This document shows, one piece after another, positions 52,169-56,969 of a DNA stretch of 64,000 nt. The position numbers were made by a program, and so were the translations under genes. The notes under the pieces were generated by a model. That model was not told where the DNA came from. It did no database searches and saw nothing but the letters and a program-made list of their open reading frames with translations. The stretch is from IMG/VR virus record IMGVR_UViG_3300035698_029839, positions 124,001 to 188,000 of that record, one strand, 5' to 3'. The first letter of the stretch is position 1. Each line of letters starts with the position of its first letter.

Positions 52169-52483
52169 TTCGCTAATTTTAATATATATGAATAACATAT
52201 TCATAAAAGGAGATTTGTTTAGCGATGACCTGAACAAATCTTTTTGTTTTAATATGTCATTATTGAAAGAATTTCTTATGACTTCTTTATCAAAAGGTTT
52301 ATTTTTTGCGAGATGGATGAGAATTTACTTAAAATCAAGAAAAGAAAAAAAACAAAGAAAAAGCACAGCCTATTATGAAAGACAGTGGGATAAGAAACTA
52401 AGAGGTTTGAAATAAAAGCAGGATTTTTGCAGGAAAAATACGATGTAATATATAGAAATGTTTAAAGGAGCAATAGAATTAAT

Positions 52484-52861
52484 ATGATAGATGAAAGATT
52501 TCCACCAGAACCAACTACACACAATCCTATAAGTATGAGGATACTAGGACTTGCAAAAACTCCATCAGCATGGGCCCAAATAGCTAGAAGAGCAGAAAAA
52601 GCAAATAAGTTCGGAGATGCTTATTATTACTGGAATGCAGGGGCAACTGCCTATACAAGAAGTTCAGAAAAAAGAGTAGTATATGAAGGATTTAGAGATA
52701 AATGTCTTGAAGTATGGAGAAAAGATAATAAATCATGCGAAGAAGAACATACTCCTAACTCCTTGACTAAAAAGGCATTAGAAGAAACAGATAAGAATAT
52801 AGACTGCTTATGGGTTGATAGTGTGGAAGAATTATTCGAAGAATTAGAAAAAGATGATTGA
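52484..52861 (+). CDS. protein with RelB/DinJ-like antitoxin C-terminus
   Basis: PNSLTKKALEE...DSVEELFEEL. Confidence 0.5.
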   Translation: MIDERFPPEPTTHNPISMRILGLAKTPSAWAQIARRAEKANKFGDAYYYWNAGATAYTRSSEKRVVYEGFRDKCLEVWRKDNKSCEEEHTPNSLTKKALEETDKNIDCLWVDSVEELFEELEKDD

Positions 52862-52885
52862 CAGAGTATAATTTTTTGGTATAAT
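52858..52885 (+). promoter_or_regulatory. consensus sigma70 promoter for the RNA cluster
   Basis: TTGACA-16nt-TATAAT with TG extension. Confidence 0.85.
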
Positions 52886-52895
52886 ACTGTTTGAA

Positions 52896-53164
52896 ATATT
52901 AATATGTTAGATGCATGGTGTGAAAATGTTGAGAGGCGACATGCCGAAACCACATGAAAAACTTTGAATCCGTTATTAGCTGAAAGGTGAGGTCAAGAAG
53001 TTTAATAGAAGGTGGGTATAAAAAATTATCCGAGGATATCGAGGGCCTTTGGAAGCCAAACGCGTAGGTAAGCCATAAATCGTAGCAAGTAACGGAGAGT
53101 TATATTTTACTTGACTTTGACTCAATGAGAGATAACAAGCCAATCTTGTCTGATATATTAATGT
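52896..53164 (+). ncRNA. unidentified structured RNA 1
   Basis: 17-bp closing stem, internal helices, no ORF. Confidence 0.65.
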
Positions 53165-53184
53165 TATTGTTCTTTAAAAATATA

Positions 53185-53309
53185 GTAGCAGTGGCGTGGA
53201 AGTCTGACAAAACCGTTTGCCAAAACGTATCTCGGGGATAATATTTGGCGAGTATATATAGGCATATATATCAGTTAAAGAGTTAGTTGCAAACCAAATT
53301 GCCTGCTAT
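53185..53309 (+). ncRNA. unidentified structured RNA 2 (tRNA-like ends)
   Basis: GTAGCAG/CTGCTAT stem, TGGCG start, internal hairpins. Confidence 0.5.
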
Positions 53310-53329
53310 TGTTCTTTAAAAATTTAAAA

Positions 53330-53679
53330 GGGGATAAACTGGTTATCGATTCTTACGGTAGAGAGTTGAATGGCGTGTACGAGATGGTAGTCGGCTCGTT
53401 TAAAAATCTACTAACAATTTATAACTGACACTAGTTATGCAAAAGCTGCTTAAGCTAAATTAAGCTGTTTGTTCCAGATTCCTGTTATGGAAACAAGCAC
53501 GAAAACAGGATGGTTGATTATCTTTTTTCTCAAGAGGATATGATGCGAGATTAATTTGAGATAGAAATGAAGAACCTTGTTAATTAGGGTCGGATTTTTG
53601 AATTTTAAATAATTAACTACGCACGTAGAAGTTTAATTTAAAAGTAAAGAAGACGCGAGTTCGAATCTCGCTATCTCCA
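53330..53679 (+). ncRNA. ssrA: tmRNA, tag (A)DTSYAKAA
   Basis: GGGGATA/TATCTCC-A acceptor with G3-U; T-arm GCGAG-TTCGAAT-CTCGC; ATAACT then tag ORF 53427-53453 ending Ala-Ala-stop. Confidence 0.93.
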
Positions 53680-53702
53680 TTATTTTAAAAAGGAAAGAAA
53701 AA

Positions 53703-53837
53703 ATGAATAAAGATAAAGAAACATTACAACTTGTTGTTAAAGATCCAGCTTTTATAAAATTGCTGAAAGAATCTGTTGAAGAAATAAAGAATGATGATGT
53801 TATTCCTGTAGATAAAAATTATTTTAGAGAGGAATAA
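53703..53837 (+). CDS. 44-aa peptide resembling the YefM/Phd antitoxin C-terminus
   Basis: ETLQLVVKDPAFIKLLKESVEEI; AAGGA SD; stop overlaps next ATG. Confidence 0.45.
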   Translation: MNKDKETLQLVVKDPAFIKLLKESVEEIKNDDVIPVDKNYFREE

Positions 53838-54160
53838 TGATGCAAGAAATGATTTTTGGGGTCGGACATAATCCGATGGCAGAGGATTTTGAAGAAGGAG
53901 AAGATGATTCAGATGTTTCATCATTTGTTGTCTATGTATCTGATAAAAAGACGTGGGAAGAGAAACATTGCTGTAATGATACGATAGAGCAAGAAGTCCG
54001 TGATGAATTGGAATATATTGGTTTTCTTGAATTTGAAGAAGCTATGTTTGAACCGAATGATCAGAGTATTAGTCGAGAGAGCATGATGCAGAAGATGATA
54101 GATTTAGGATTTTTGCATGATCCTGATTTTGAAAAATTTATGGCAAGTGCAACCGAATAA
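53837..54160 (+). CDS. acidic hypothetical protein
   Basis: GAGG SD; very acidic. Confidence 0.55.
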   Translation: MMQEMIFGVGHNPMAEDFEEGEDDSDVSSFVVYVSDKKTWEEKHCCNDTIEQEVRDELEYIGFLEFEEAMFEPNDQSISRESMMQKMIDLGFLHDPDFEKFMASATE

Positions 54161-54239
54161 TTAAAATTTATTAATCTTTTTAAAGAATCTATTAAAGAAA
54201 TAAGGAATGATGATGTTATTTTCGTAGAGGAAAACTATT

Positions 54240-54503
54240 ATGGAAGACAAACCAATAGATAAACCTTTTAGTGAAGAGGATCTACAAAAAGCAAAAAAAC
54301 TTGCTAGAGATTCTCATATCGTTCTTGAAGGAGATCAAAAATCAGGATTCATTGGGACTTGTGCAGAAATGCCCACAGTGATGAACGATGGAGAAACAGA
54401 CGAAGAGTGTATAGAGAAGACAAGAGAATCCATTCAAGTAGCAATAGCTTTTATGCTTGAAGAAGGAATGAAAATACCTAAACCAAATTCACGGAAAAAA
54501 TAA
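54240..54503 (+). CDS. HicB-like antitoxin domain
   Basis: GFIGTCAEMP....GET.EE......E.I......G..IP.P. Confidence 0.8.
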   Translation: MEDKPIDKPFSEEDLQKAKKLARDSHIVLEGDQKSGFIGTCAEMPTVMNDGETDEECIEKTRESIQVAIAFMLEEGMKIPKPNSRKK

Positions 54504-55009: not shown

Positions 55010-55050
55010 AACCTCTCATTTTTAGTAATTGCGAAATGAGAGGTTTTTTT
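55010..55050 (+). terminator. intrinsic terminator
   Basis: AACCTCTCATTT/AAATGAGAGGTT plus T-run. Confidence 0.75.
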
Positions 55051-55062
55051 CGCAGAAAATAC

Positions 55063-55090
55063 TTGAAAGTGAAAGTGTGTATGGTATAAT
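55063..55090 (+). promoter_or_regulatory. sigma70-type promoter with AGTGAAA box
   Basis: TTGAAA-16nt-TATAAT. Confidence 0.75.
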
Positions 55091-55109
55091 GCTTTCGAAA
55101 GTTATTAAG

Positions 55110-55661
55110 ATGAAGAATATCCAATTAACAGAGAAACAACAAAAATTAATTACAGATAACTATAGGTTATTATGGAGTTTCATACATAAGACTATTGAGA
55201 ACGGAGAGGTTCCTAAGCATTTAGAAGATGATTTTATTAGCGATATGTTTTTTAAGTTTTGTTTGTCAGCCTTAAAATTTAGTGAGGAATCAGGTTTTAA
55301 ATTTTCTACTTATGCGTATGGAGGTTTTAAATTCGGACTTCATAATATTTTAATGTATAAAAAAAACAAGTTTGGAAGATTATATTATTTTGAAAATATT
55401 GATGAGTACAAATTAAAATATAAAAAAATAGATAAATTAGAAAGTGATTCTTTACATAAATTTATTGATGATGTAGATTTAGATCAAAGAGATAAGTCTA
55501 TAATAAAAGATTATTCTTATGAAGGATTGACTTTTAAAGATATAGGACAAAAACTCAATATGAGTGCTGAGGCTGTTCGGATGAGATTTAAAAAATCTTT
55601 GAAAAAAATTAAGCGTGTTGCTAGTCTAAAAAGATTGAAGTTTGAAGATTTTTATAAATAA
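55110..55661 (+). CDS. sigma70-family factor
   Basis: KFSTYAY region 2; TFKDIGQKLNMSAEAVR region 4; start moved downstream of promoter. Confidence 0.8.
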   Translation: MKNIQLTEKQQKLITDNYRLLWSFIHKTIENGEVPKHLEDDFISDMFFKFCLSALKFSEESGFKFSTYAYGGFKFGLHNILMYKKNKFGRLYYFENIDEYKLKYKKIDKLESDSLHKFIDDVDLDQRDKSIIKDYSYEGLTFKDIGQKLNMSAEAVRMRFKKSLKKIKRVASLKRLKFEDFYK

Positions 55662-55674
55662 GTGAAGGAACAAA

Positions 55675-56247
55675 ATGAAGCAAAAAATACTTAAATCAGA
55701 GAAGATAACAGATCAGTTGTGGATCAACCTGTTCAAAGTCAAGTACCTCAACTCCAAAGATAAAGTATGTAATTGGATTTTTGCGTCCAGAAAAAAAGAT
55801 CCATTTAAAGATAAAAAGGTAGATGCGGTAGTTATTGTTGCTACCGTTGATACTCCTGAAGGACGAAAATTAGCAGTAACAAAAGAGTATCGAGCACCAA
55901 TTCATGATTATGAATATGGATTTCCTGCTGGTCTAATAGATGAAGGAATGACAATAGACGAAACGGTAGAGAAAGAATTAAAAGAAGAAACAGGCTTAGA
56001 TCTGATTAGGATTATAGATAAGAGCGGCTCTGTGTATTCTTCTGCTGGGCTATCTGATGAAGCAGTAGTTATAGTATTTGTAGAAGCAAAAGGAGAAATT
56101 AGCGTAAAACATCAAGAAGACACTGAAGATATAGAAATTTTTCTTTATGATATAAATGATATTAATGATTTATTAACCTCTAATAAAAAAATAGGGGCAA
56201 AAGGTTGGGGTGTTTTGTATTATTATTCTAAAATAGGTAAAATATAA
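55675..56247 (+). CDS. Nudix hydrolase (ADP-ribose pyrophosphatase-like)
   Basis: PAGLIDEG.......KELKEETG, SSAGLSDE. Confidence 0.9.
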   Translation: MKQKILKSEKITDQLWINLFKVKYLNSKDKVCNWIFASRKKDPFKDKKVDAVVIVATVDTPEGRKLAVTKEYRAPIHDYEYGFPAGLIDEGMTIDETVEKELKEETGLDLIRIIDKSGSVYSSAGLSDEAVVIVFVEAKGEISVKHQEDTEDIEIFLYDINDINDLLTSNKKIGAKGWGVLYYYSKIGKI

Positions 56248-56969
56248 TGAAGGAAGATAGACAAGATGTTAAATACACTTTTGAACAGGTGGAAAATATA
56301 CTGTACAAACAAGCTCATAAAGTTCATGAAGTATGGCCTAATAAATATGAAGTAGATGAATTAGTTAATGAAGTATGGCTCAAAGGTGATATACAAAAAC
56401 TCAATAATATTAAATTTGTCTCTAGTAGAGCATATTGGGATATGATAGATTATATAAGAATTTCTGAAGGTAGAGATTTGATTAGAAAAAGTGGAATAAT
56501 TAAAAGACCTAAATATATAAACAATATGCATGATATTCTGCACGATAGGGAAAGCTCTAGCAGAAAAGGTTATGATTTTTTTGACGATATAGAATCAAAA
56601 GAACAAGATATTTCAAAATTTATTGATAATAAAGATGAAATTGATTATTTGCTTAAATGCTTGCCTAAGAAAAAACGTATAATACTAGAAAAATATTTTT
56701 TAGAAGGTATGAGTCTGACAGAAGTAGGAGAAATATTGGGGCTTAAAGATGTAACTGTTTGCAATTTTAAAAGAATGGCTATAGAAAGAATTAGAAAATA
56801 TAATAATATTAAGCCGATAAATTCAAAGATATTGAGAATTATTAATACTCCTAAAAAACAAGTTCTTCCTTTAGAAGAAGTTTTACCAGAATATGTAGTC
56901 GATTATGAAATAGATAATGAATGCGCATTAGAAGAAGATATAGACCTGATAGAGAAAACTTTATTATAG
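56247..56969 (+). CDS. sigma70-family factor (FliA/ECF-like)
   Basis: DELVNE, MIDYIR, LP......MSLTEVGEILG....V. Confidence 0.75.
   Translation: MKEDRQDVKYTFEQVENILYKQAHKVHEVWPNKYEVDELVNEVWLKGDIQKLNNIKFVSSRAYWDMIDYIRISEGRDLIRKSGIIKRPKYINNMHDILHDRESSSRKGYDFFDDIESKEQDISKFIDNKDEIDYLLKCLPKKKRIILEKYFLEGMSLTEVGEILGLKDVTVCNFKRMAIERIRKYNNIKPINSKILRIINTPKKQVLPLEEVLPEYVVDYEIDNECALEEDIDLIEKTLL

Follow-up and report, generated by a model that had tools for sequence, protein, structure and literature searches.

How does the C-terminal end of a small phage protein, encoded just upstream of a transfer-messenger RNA (tmRNA) gene, come to resemble the toxin-binding end of an antitoxin, and is this protein part of a larger device built around the tmRNA? 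The question is raised by a 64,000-nucleotide (nt) stretch of DNA, here called the window, which covers bases 124001-188000 of the 297,710-bp IMG/VR virus record IMGVR_UViG_3300035698_029839 (CheckV completeness 62%). An original prediction, made from the letters of the window, had described positions 52484-54503 as a translation-rescue island, in which the tmRNA is flanked by three orphan antitoxin-like open reading frames (ORFs). These are here called ORF A, ORF B and ORF D, and a further one between B and D is called ORF C. We show that a 111-nt in-frame insertion, found in this lineage only, has grafted a DinJ-type tail onto ORF A, which is a conserved helical protein of the phage.

ORF A (52484-52861; all window features described here are on the + strand) encodes 125 amino acids (aa) and its C-terminal end reads ...PNSLTKKALEE...SVEELFEELEKDD. 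Residues 1 to about 86 (52484-52741) form an N-terminal domain, a phage helical bundle that is conserved and has a generic TPR/MIT-like shape according to its homologs, an AlphaFold2 (AF2) model and Foldseek. Residues 87-125 and the stop codon (52742-52861) are the DinJ-type toxin-binding C-terminus, as delimited by the indel, a hidden Markov model (HMM), hhalign and a co-fold. We compared the locus with seven loci of the same clade, where L004, L007 and L010 were recovered via proteins and L119-L122 via a conserved tmRNA core pattern. The only relatives of ORF A are 88-89 aa long, share 61-72% identity with it and stop where the antitoxin-like part starts. In the DNA alignment with L004 this appears as a single clean in-frame indel of 111 nt, just upstream of the shared stop codon and promoter. 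The tail is present in none of the seven relatives and is confined to the lineage of the window phage, and no second copy of the tail, of B or of D exists elsewhere in the phage genome.

The origin of the tail can be traced by several types of alignment. In a Smith-Waterman comparison, the extra 37 residues align to residues 53-84 of E. coli DinJ without gaps and C-terminus to C-terminus (score 49, z=7), a score matched by 0 of 2,000 shuffles; the same comparison with RelB and YefM gives nothing. When the tail is searched with tblastn against 7.3 Gb of plasmids (E<=10), the sole match is the last 36 residues of the RelB/DinJ antitoxin of Zymomonas pZA1003 (WP_012817728), at 41.7% identity. The gene of this antitoxin is located directly 5' of a toxin gene that belongs to the Pfam family YafQ_toxin (1.5e-30).

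DinJ-family HMMs were built from 51 distinct sequences from metagenome and viral loci, with the window sequence excluded. Among the 5,501 stop-to-stop ORFs of the phage in six frames, ORF A ranks first, with E=3.1e-4 for the tail model and E=1.7e-3 for the full model, while the runner-up has E=0.067. The tail obtains 22.5 bits and the best of 20,000 composition-preserving shuffles 11.4. With hhalign, residues 87-122 are placed on positions 50-85 of 86 of the DinJ family, with a probability of 75% and E=2.4e-5. The tail keeps the pattern PN.LT...D...DS..ELF..LE, with 42% of residues identical in the Zymomonas protein and about 30% in E. coli DinJ, and the equivalent of DinJ alpha4 is inside the matched stretch (DDLFDKL vs EELFEEL). 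In the known complex, DinJ's C-terminal end is wrapped about YafQ, and the complex is lost upon deletion of residues 77-86 (PMC12301738).

Pfam, PHROGs, NCBIfam and PADLOC contain no match for ORF A or for the isolated tail. In a language-model atlas the tail has a weak lead, to a cluster of fragments that is 17% RelB (score 0.84). A phmmer search of all PDB sequences (E<=10) with the tail returns nothing, only the ORF A tail itself comes back when the tail alone is queried against a word index of 5.8 billion proteins, and scans of genomes and viral contigs with the tail and with B find no relatives. Taken together, the ORF A tail is very probably homologous to the toxin-binding tails of DinJ-type antitoxins. 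The proposed resemblance of the end of ORF A to RelB/DinJ is thus supported by significant family HMM and hhalign results.

We also co-folded one complex, consisting of ORF A residues 84-125 and YafQ_ECOLI. The score is 0.74 compared with 0.03 for the best control, and the mark applied to this run is passed by 51 of 78 solved complexes and by 2 of 108 mismatched pairs. The entire tail takes part in the predicted interface, and on the YafQ side it includes residues 87 and 90-92. These residues we take to be the location of the active site. The complex prediction with YafQ that had been proposed as a check on ORF A therefore yields a high-scoring predicted dock.

The rest of ORF A does not resemble an antitoxin. 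AF2 predicts four helices at residues 15-83 with a predicted local distance difference test score (pLDDT) of 80-93, and Foldseek with this model identifies generic TPR/MIT-like neighbours only (E>0.07). The tail is modelled with low confidence and a single terminal helix at 114-121, a picture that would be expected for a tail that folds upon binding. Weak NCBIfam matches to ANR_neg_reg, a family of small AraC-negative regulators, occur at the same positions in the N-domain and in its homolog P0002 (E=0.52 and 0.029). The ribbon-helix-helix (RHH) family PF04221 has no match in ORF A at E<=1, in the tail at E<=10 or in the phage genome, and both the HMM and hhalign place ORF A only on DinJ positions 50-85, i.e., past the DNA-binding half. 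The predicted lack of a DNA-binding domain in ORF A is therefore borne out, by the missing PF04221 match and the all-helical N-domain in the AF2 model. The protein is not the minimal mimic that had been proposed, as the tail is a graft on an unrelated helical domain of 85 residues.

An antitoxin usually has its toxin next to it, and the original prediction had noted that no cognate toxin is visible here. Downstream of ORF A are a promoter, a leader RNA and the tmRNA, with no adjacent RelE/YafQ-family toxin gene. The Pfam families HicA_toxin, ParE_toxin, YoeB_toxin and YafQ_toxin have no match anywhere in the 298-kb record, at 62% completeness and with a search of weak sensitivity for short families. 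YafQ_toxin also has no match in a 351-kb huge-phage relative (L010), whose record is incomplete. Adjacent toxins in related genomes were looked for as well, and among the ORFs beside the tmRNA in the seven relatives no toxin domain is found.

ORF D (54240-54503) encodes 87 aa and is, judging from Pfam, PHROG, PDB and tblastn matches, probably a stand-alone HicB-like N-terminal domain. Residues 27-84 match Pfam HicB_lk_antitox (PF15919) with E=1.7e-5 and 25.4 bits, compared with a cut-off of 27, and further matches are found to UPF0150 (E=5e-4) and to the HicB-like PHROG 497 (E=4e-7). The best PDB matches are HicB chains (E=0.04, chain residues 11-61 of 138), and the best tblastn matches in phage records are annotated as HicB family. 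The ortholog in L010 shows the same Pfam match at 25.7 bits, which is also sub-threshold. D carries an N-terminal extension of 26 residues, and since the protein ends right after the N-domain (residue 87), it is without a C-terminal RHH or helix-turn-helix (HTH) DNA-binding domain. No hicA gene is found beside D, the neighbours being C and a 117-aa ORF. Of the earlier description of D as a stand-alone HicB-like domain, the single-domain layout stands, and the HicB likeness is consistent yet just under the Pfam cut-off.

ORF C (53837-54160) encodes an acidic protein of 107 aa with an isoelectric point (pI) of 4.1. It has homologs in L010 (6258-6587, 48% identity) and L120 (2445-2756 on the - strand, 42% identity), and a KKTWEEKHCC motif is invariant. 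C sits, in translational coupling, behind an antitoxin-like gene, i.e., it occupies the "toxin position", behind B in the window (TAATG) and behind D in L010 (ATGA overlap). C has no match in Pfam, PHROGs, NCBIfam, PADLOC or the language-model atlas. The L010 homolog has a faint 15-residue match to HicA_toxin (E=0.11), which is missing from the window copy. The idea that C might be a HicA-like toxin in disguise was rejected, as the protein is acidic and lacks a catalytic motif, and the faint match is seen in one ortholog only.

ORF B (53703-53837) is an acidic ORFan of 44 aa with a plausible ribosome-binding site, known from the ORF list, phmmer and a YefM-family HMM. Its stop codon overlaps the start of C (TAATG), an arrangement of translational coupling. 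The original prediction had pointed to a 44-aa ORF outside the ORF track, and this ORF is confirmed at these coordinates; gene calling in an independent ENA assembly (contig L116) picks it up as well. Its supposed resemblance to YefM/Phd could not be substantiated. The YefM-family HMM, built from the E. coli YefM together with six diverse homologs on plasmids, each beside a YoeB gene, gives B 6.5 bits, a value equalled by 4 of 20,000 shuffles, and genome-wide B ranks 2-4 with E=0.3-5. With hhalign, B against the YefM family has a probability of 8% and P=0.004, and the negative control, B against DinJ, has P=0.75. Residues 5-34 of B can be aligned to the YoeB-binding region of YefM, positions 48-76 (ETL.L..P.....L..S[IV]). 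Neither the Phd/YefM fold domain (PF02604) in the 44-aa ORF nor a YoeB or Doc gene beside it is found, and the downstream gene is the acidic ORF C. The likeness of B to the YoeB-binding part of YefM is marginal at the sequence level, a lead that falls short of a finding.

Database searches with B are equally poor. An exhaustive phmmer search of 1.84 billion representatives finds B itself and one repeat protein; this seven-repeat protein was rejected as a relative, its score being inflated by the repeats. No meaningful match is found by phmmer in PDB (E<=10) or in NCBIfam, PHROGs and PADLOC, and Pfam gives DUF2683 only, with E=0.01. A tblastn search gives nothing in plasmids and, in phages, only chance matches antisense to tape-measure genes. 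A viral scan with a single YefM finds nothing, and the language-model atlas holds nothing usable for B or C.

Between C and D there is a second trace of B, here called B' (54161-54259), a pseudo-copy of B's 3' half that has no start codon, continues in frame after the stop codon of C and runs into the start of D. It is recognised from a direct repeat, 53751-53828 vs 54167-54244, with 78% identity over 78 nt; the encoded protein is 53% identical, with conservative changes. B' has no match in Pfam, PHROGs, NCBIfam or PADLOC. It marks a past rearrangement, from the D-C order of the relatives to B-C-B'-D.

The tmRNA itself (53330-53682) is identified by both ARAGORN and Rfam. ARAGORN gives the tag as DTSYAKAA*, with a stop codon after a protease-type ...AA C-terminus, and the complete tag is (A)DTSYAKAA. 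Rfam RF00023 matches over model positions 1-374 and scores 95 bits, where the gathering score is 47 (E=1e-35); the tmRNA of the original prediction is real. Orthologs are found in L004, L007, L010 and L119-L122, with Rfam scores of 90-125 bits for the L004, L007 and L010 set, and the tag in the relatives is DTSYAMAA*. ARAGORN misses the tmRNAs of L007 (4194-4553) and L010 (5608-5955), for which Rfam gives 90 and 125 bits; by eye, their tags end in AIAA and AMAA. SmpB (PF01668) is not found in the phage record or in its huge-phage relative. Since the phage record has no SmpB, the phage tmRNA would depend on the SmpB of the host.

Upstream of the tmRNA is a consensus sigma70 promoter (52858-52885; TTGACA-16 nt-TATAAT, with TG before the -10 box), which agrees with the consensus at 12 of 12 positions. 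The TGA stop codon of ORF A sits within the -35 box of this promoter, which reads toward the leader and the tmRNA. This arrangement recurs in L004, L007 and L010. The promoter is followed by a structured leader RNA of about 300 nt (52886-53186), defined by alignment with L010 (5345-5607) and L007 (3900-4193) and by RNAalifold. For the three sequences RNAalifold predicts 53 pairs, 6 of them with compensatory changes, arranged as a long closing helix and five internal hairpins. This region has no Rfam match, and it could be a precursor leader of the tmRNA or a separate phage small RNA.

Between leader and tmRNA, the window has a specific insert of 142 nt (53187-53328) that is missing from L010 and L007. 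It is bounded by a direct repeat, TGyTATTGTTCTTTAAAAAT, at 53162 and 53304. The repeat sequence directly precedes the tmRNA in every relative and is possibly a promoter element or a processing site of which the window has a duplicate. No terminator is predicted between the tmRNA and B-C-D. As to the content of the cluster, the tmRNA and ORFs A, B and D of the original prediction are all there, and what had been overlooked is ORF C, B', the sigma70 promoter and the leader RNA.

Is the cluster then an island? All seven relatives carry the tmRNA, and what follows it varies. In L010, it is D and then C with an ATGA overlap, in L007 a D that looks frameshifted, in L120 C alone, in L004 a zinc-finger protein, in L119 and L121 lipoprotein-like or glycine-zipper ORFs, and in L122 other genes. 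The D ortholog of L007 (4575-4823) consists of a short MKDKPIDAPYQ* frame and a restart, and it diverges past about residue 40. This apparently broken D may be either gene decay or an assembly error. D is a clade gene kept after the tmRNA in two relatives, L010 and, in seemingly broken form, L007, and ORF B is in none of the seven. On the other side, the position of ORF A, from a small basic ORF to the tmRNA promoter, is held by a papain-like Peptidase_C1 gene in L007, L010 and L119-L121. The coordinates of this peptidase gene are 4049-5032 in L010 and 2833-3867 in L007.

The small basic ORF (52188-52415, 75 aa, ending ...ERQWDKKLRGLK) is taken from the ORF list and has homologs in L004, L007, L010, L119 and L120. 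It is conserved in the clade, where ORF A or the peptidase gene follows directly downstream, and has no family match in Pfam, PHROGs, NCBIfam or PADLOC. A terminator-like hairpin of 16 bp is seen at 52207-52245, within the 5' part of this ORF.

The genes around the locus encode a DNA methylase, a dCMP deaminase, two sigma factors and a NUDIX hydrolase. Because this neighbourhood is syntenic by descent, the fact that these genes and the tmRNA lie together does not speak for a functional link. The co-location is best read as a variable accessory slot inside an otherwise syntenic region, with no conserved functional unit. The terms "translation-rescue island" and "arsenal" do not survive this comparison, as the tail and B are lineage-specific and the slot after the tmRNA is variable in the clade.

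The source is a huge phage and not a bacterial chromosome. The window has a GC content of 31% and nearly every gene is on the + strand. At 55029-56969, downstream of the locus, the NUDIX hydrolase gene is flanked by two sigma-70-family factor genes, and the group is kept in the relatives; the conserved pair of sigma factors suggests phage-directed transcription control. Matches resembling tRNAs are seen near position 251.4 kb of the huge-phage genome. The arrangement of the locus is genuine and is no artefact of assembly: the window is matched at 100% identity by two independent ENA contigs, over 1,716 and 596 nt, and Logan contigs from four salt-lake runs have zero differences over ORF A including the tail and over the segment from the end of B through C and B' to the start of D. 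No tail-less variant of ORF A is seen among these Logan contigs. A near-identical sequence is present in many salt-lake metagenome runs from 2017-2019; no RNA run is among the runs that carry the locus.

In true DinJ antitoxins, the C-terminal segment wraps and silences the YafQ/RelE-family ribosome-dependent mRNases. We suggest that the phage may disarm host RNA-cutting toxins by means of the ORF A tail and D. Upon infection, labile host antitoxins would decay and RelE/YafQ-type toxins would be released as an abortive-infection response. ORF A would then act as a decoy antitoxin, the disordered tail folding onto the host toxin and blocking its active-site face, with the helical N-domain as a stable carrier only. 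As ORF A has no DNA-binding domain, it would not be autoregulating. D could likewise sequester HicA-type RNases, although this is less clear-cut, as D is an older clade-conserved gene paired with the acidic C. The tmRNA, with host SmpB, would free ribosomes stalled on truncated mRNAs of any cause. Accessory genes have gathered around the tmRNA of this huge salt-lake phage, and we put their nearness to it down to synteny inherited by descent and to an insertion slot that varies. RelE-family toxins cut mRNA on ribosomes (PMC12301738), and HicA cleaves mRNAs and tmRNA (PMC5408214, citing Jorgensen et al. 2009). This background, which the original prediction had used, holds and makes a link between tmRNA and toxins plausible, but it is no demonstration of one here.

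Whether the ORF A tail actually neutralises a host toxin, as a putative decoy antitoxin, we judge to be evenly balanced. Several observations weigh against it. As the DinJ-YafQ complex has already been solved, the co-fold shows likeness and does not demonstrate binding. Close homologs that have no tail fare well, and the N-domain can therefore function without it. The tail is known from a single phage population with no sequence variation. The phage record is 62% complete, and the absent portion could hold a cognate toxin. Short families are poorly detected by the six-frame family search, whose own controls rarely passed the cut-off. For D, the AF2 model, from a two-sequence alignment, has a pLDDT of 50 and the Pfam score is below the gathering score.

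Different explanations of the locus can be weighed against this proposal. It is hardly credible that the tail is an acidic amphipathic helix that shares no origin with DinJ and resembles it by chance or convergence. Such an explanation could draw on the shortness of the matched segment, about 36 residues, and on the failure of the PDB-wide phmmer, Pfam and the 5.8-billion-protein word search to match the tail. However, the shuffles never come near the observed score (at most 11.4 bits in 20,000 against 22.5), the two proteins match co-linearly, each with its C-terminus as the anchor, the best plasmid-wide match by tblastn is a RelB/DinJ antitoxin, and hhalign reaches E=2.4e-5. A minor but real possibility is that the tail, B and B' are unused leftovers of illegitimate recombination with host or plasmid toxin-antitoxin (TA) loci, near a highly expressed tmRNA. 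The slot after the tmRNA does differ in nearly every relative, B' is clearly a partial duplicate undergoing decay, the L007 copy of D has a frameshifted look, and the tail and B are restricted to one lineage with no diverged copies. What speaks against unused leftovers is that the tail is exactly in frame, is C-terminal as in DinJ and keeps PN.LT...ELF..L, including the alpha4 motif that is essential for YafQ binding (PMC12301738), that it is predicted with high confidence to dock on YafQ, and that the locus is identical in samples from 2017-2019.

The partner of the tail could also be encoded by the phage itself. The tail would then bind a RelE/YafQ-like phage toxin elsewhere, or C would have D as its antitoxin in L010 and B in the window, in a TA or superinfection-exclusion module of the phage rather than a counter-defence directed at host toxins. 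We find this unlikely. The incompleteness of the record (62%) leaves room for it, C is coupled directly behind D in L010 (ATGA) and behind B in the window (TAATG), and the L010 homolog of C has the faint HicA_toxin match (E=0.11). However, no toxin-family domain is found in the 298 kb and no YafQ_toxin in the 351-kb relative; C is strongly acidic (pI 4.1), unlike RNA-binding toxins, and has no toxin signature; and the faint HicA match is missing from the window C, while C is present without D in L120. Quite unlikely, too, is the complete model of the original prediction, where tmRNA, a decoy with a DinJ tail, a micropeptide B with a YefM tail and a HicB-N decoy make up one coordinated rescue and anti-toxin island. 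It gains from the assignments of the A tail and D, from the strong upstream promoter without a predicted terminator between tmRNA and B-C-D, from the cleavage of tmRNA by HicA (PMC5408214, citing Jorgensen 2009), and from the comparison of B with the YoeB-binding part of YefM, which beats nearly all shuffles (4 of 20,000 reach its score; hhalign P=0.004). However, B is not significant genome-wide (E=0.3-5) or in any database, the components are not inherited together in the clade, and synteny explains the co-location. We give equally little credence to a modular hub, in which the tmRNA clears stalled ribosomes and bare modules act against YafQ/RelE (the DinJ tail), HicA (the HicB N-domain) and YoeB (the YefM-like micropeptide).

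If the decoy proposal is true and YafQ/RelE are neutralised, antitoxin tails would be portable anti-defence modules, and the locus would exemplify how a phage counters defences based on ribosome-dependent mRNases. Tail-only profiles would then also be a justified strategy in the search for further grafts. Such tails are missed by ordinary domain annotation, since Pfam, PHROG, NCBIfam and PADLOC give no match here. The natural homologs without the tail are a ready-made control.

Among the closest known systems is DinJ of DinJ-YafQ (E. coli b0226; Zymomonas WP_012817728), whose toxin-suppression tail corresponds column by column to the final 36 residues of ORF A. Unlike DinJ, ORF A is without the RHH domain for DNA binding and dimerisation and without a downstream toxin gene, it has an unrelated 86-residue N-terminal phage domain, and it is carried by a lytic-looking huge phage. 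Because there is neither an RHH domain nor a cognate toxin, we place ORF A outside the RelB/DinJ antitoxins and regard the tail as a shared module. For YefM of YefM-YoeB, B is alignable to the YoeB-binding region, but not significantly, and has no fold domain and no YoeB or Doc neighbour, so it is not filed as a member. D matches the HicA-binding N-domain of HicB and of UPF0150 single-domain proteins (PF15919, PF21748, PHROG 497), and HicB-like genes are common in phages (PHROG 497). Unlike HicB, D is sub-threshold, has an N-terminal extension, no C-terminal DNA-binding domain and no hicA neighbour, and is paired with C in a relative.

The tmRNA resembles those of other phages (the mycobacteriophage Bxz1 group, Bacillus phage G and huge phages; PMC4131195), where a complete tmRNA is likewise found in a large phage without its own SmpB. 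Unlike these, the window tmRNA is preceded by a consensus sigma70 promoter and a clade-conserved structured leader of about 300 nt.

Phages are also known to carry antitoxin-like proteins of their own, and Dmd of T4 is a phage antitoxin mimic. Phage orphan antitoxins against TA defences are established for the DarG-like proteins of T4-like phages, ICP1 and chimalliviruses, and YefM, TacA and MazE are predicted in cyanophage S-CREM1 (PMC11825919, PMC11481870, PMC13309987, PMC9964418). Like these, the window phage has an antitoxin-derived element without a toxin, presumably directed against TA-based abortive infection of the host. However, the characterised phage orphan antitoxins are whole domains, enzymes or unrelated mimics, and act mostly against DarT, ToxN or RnlA, while here only the disordered toxin-binding peptide is present, carried on another protein. 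The novelty is therefore in the architecture, a tail-only graft that is overlooked by every standard annotation library.

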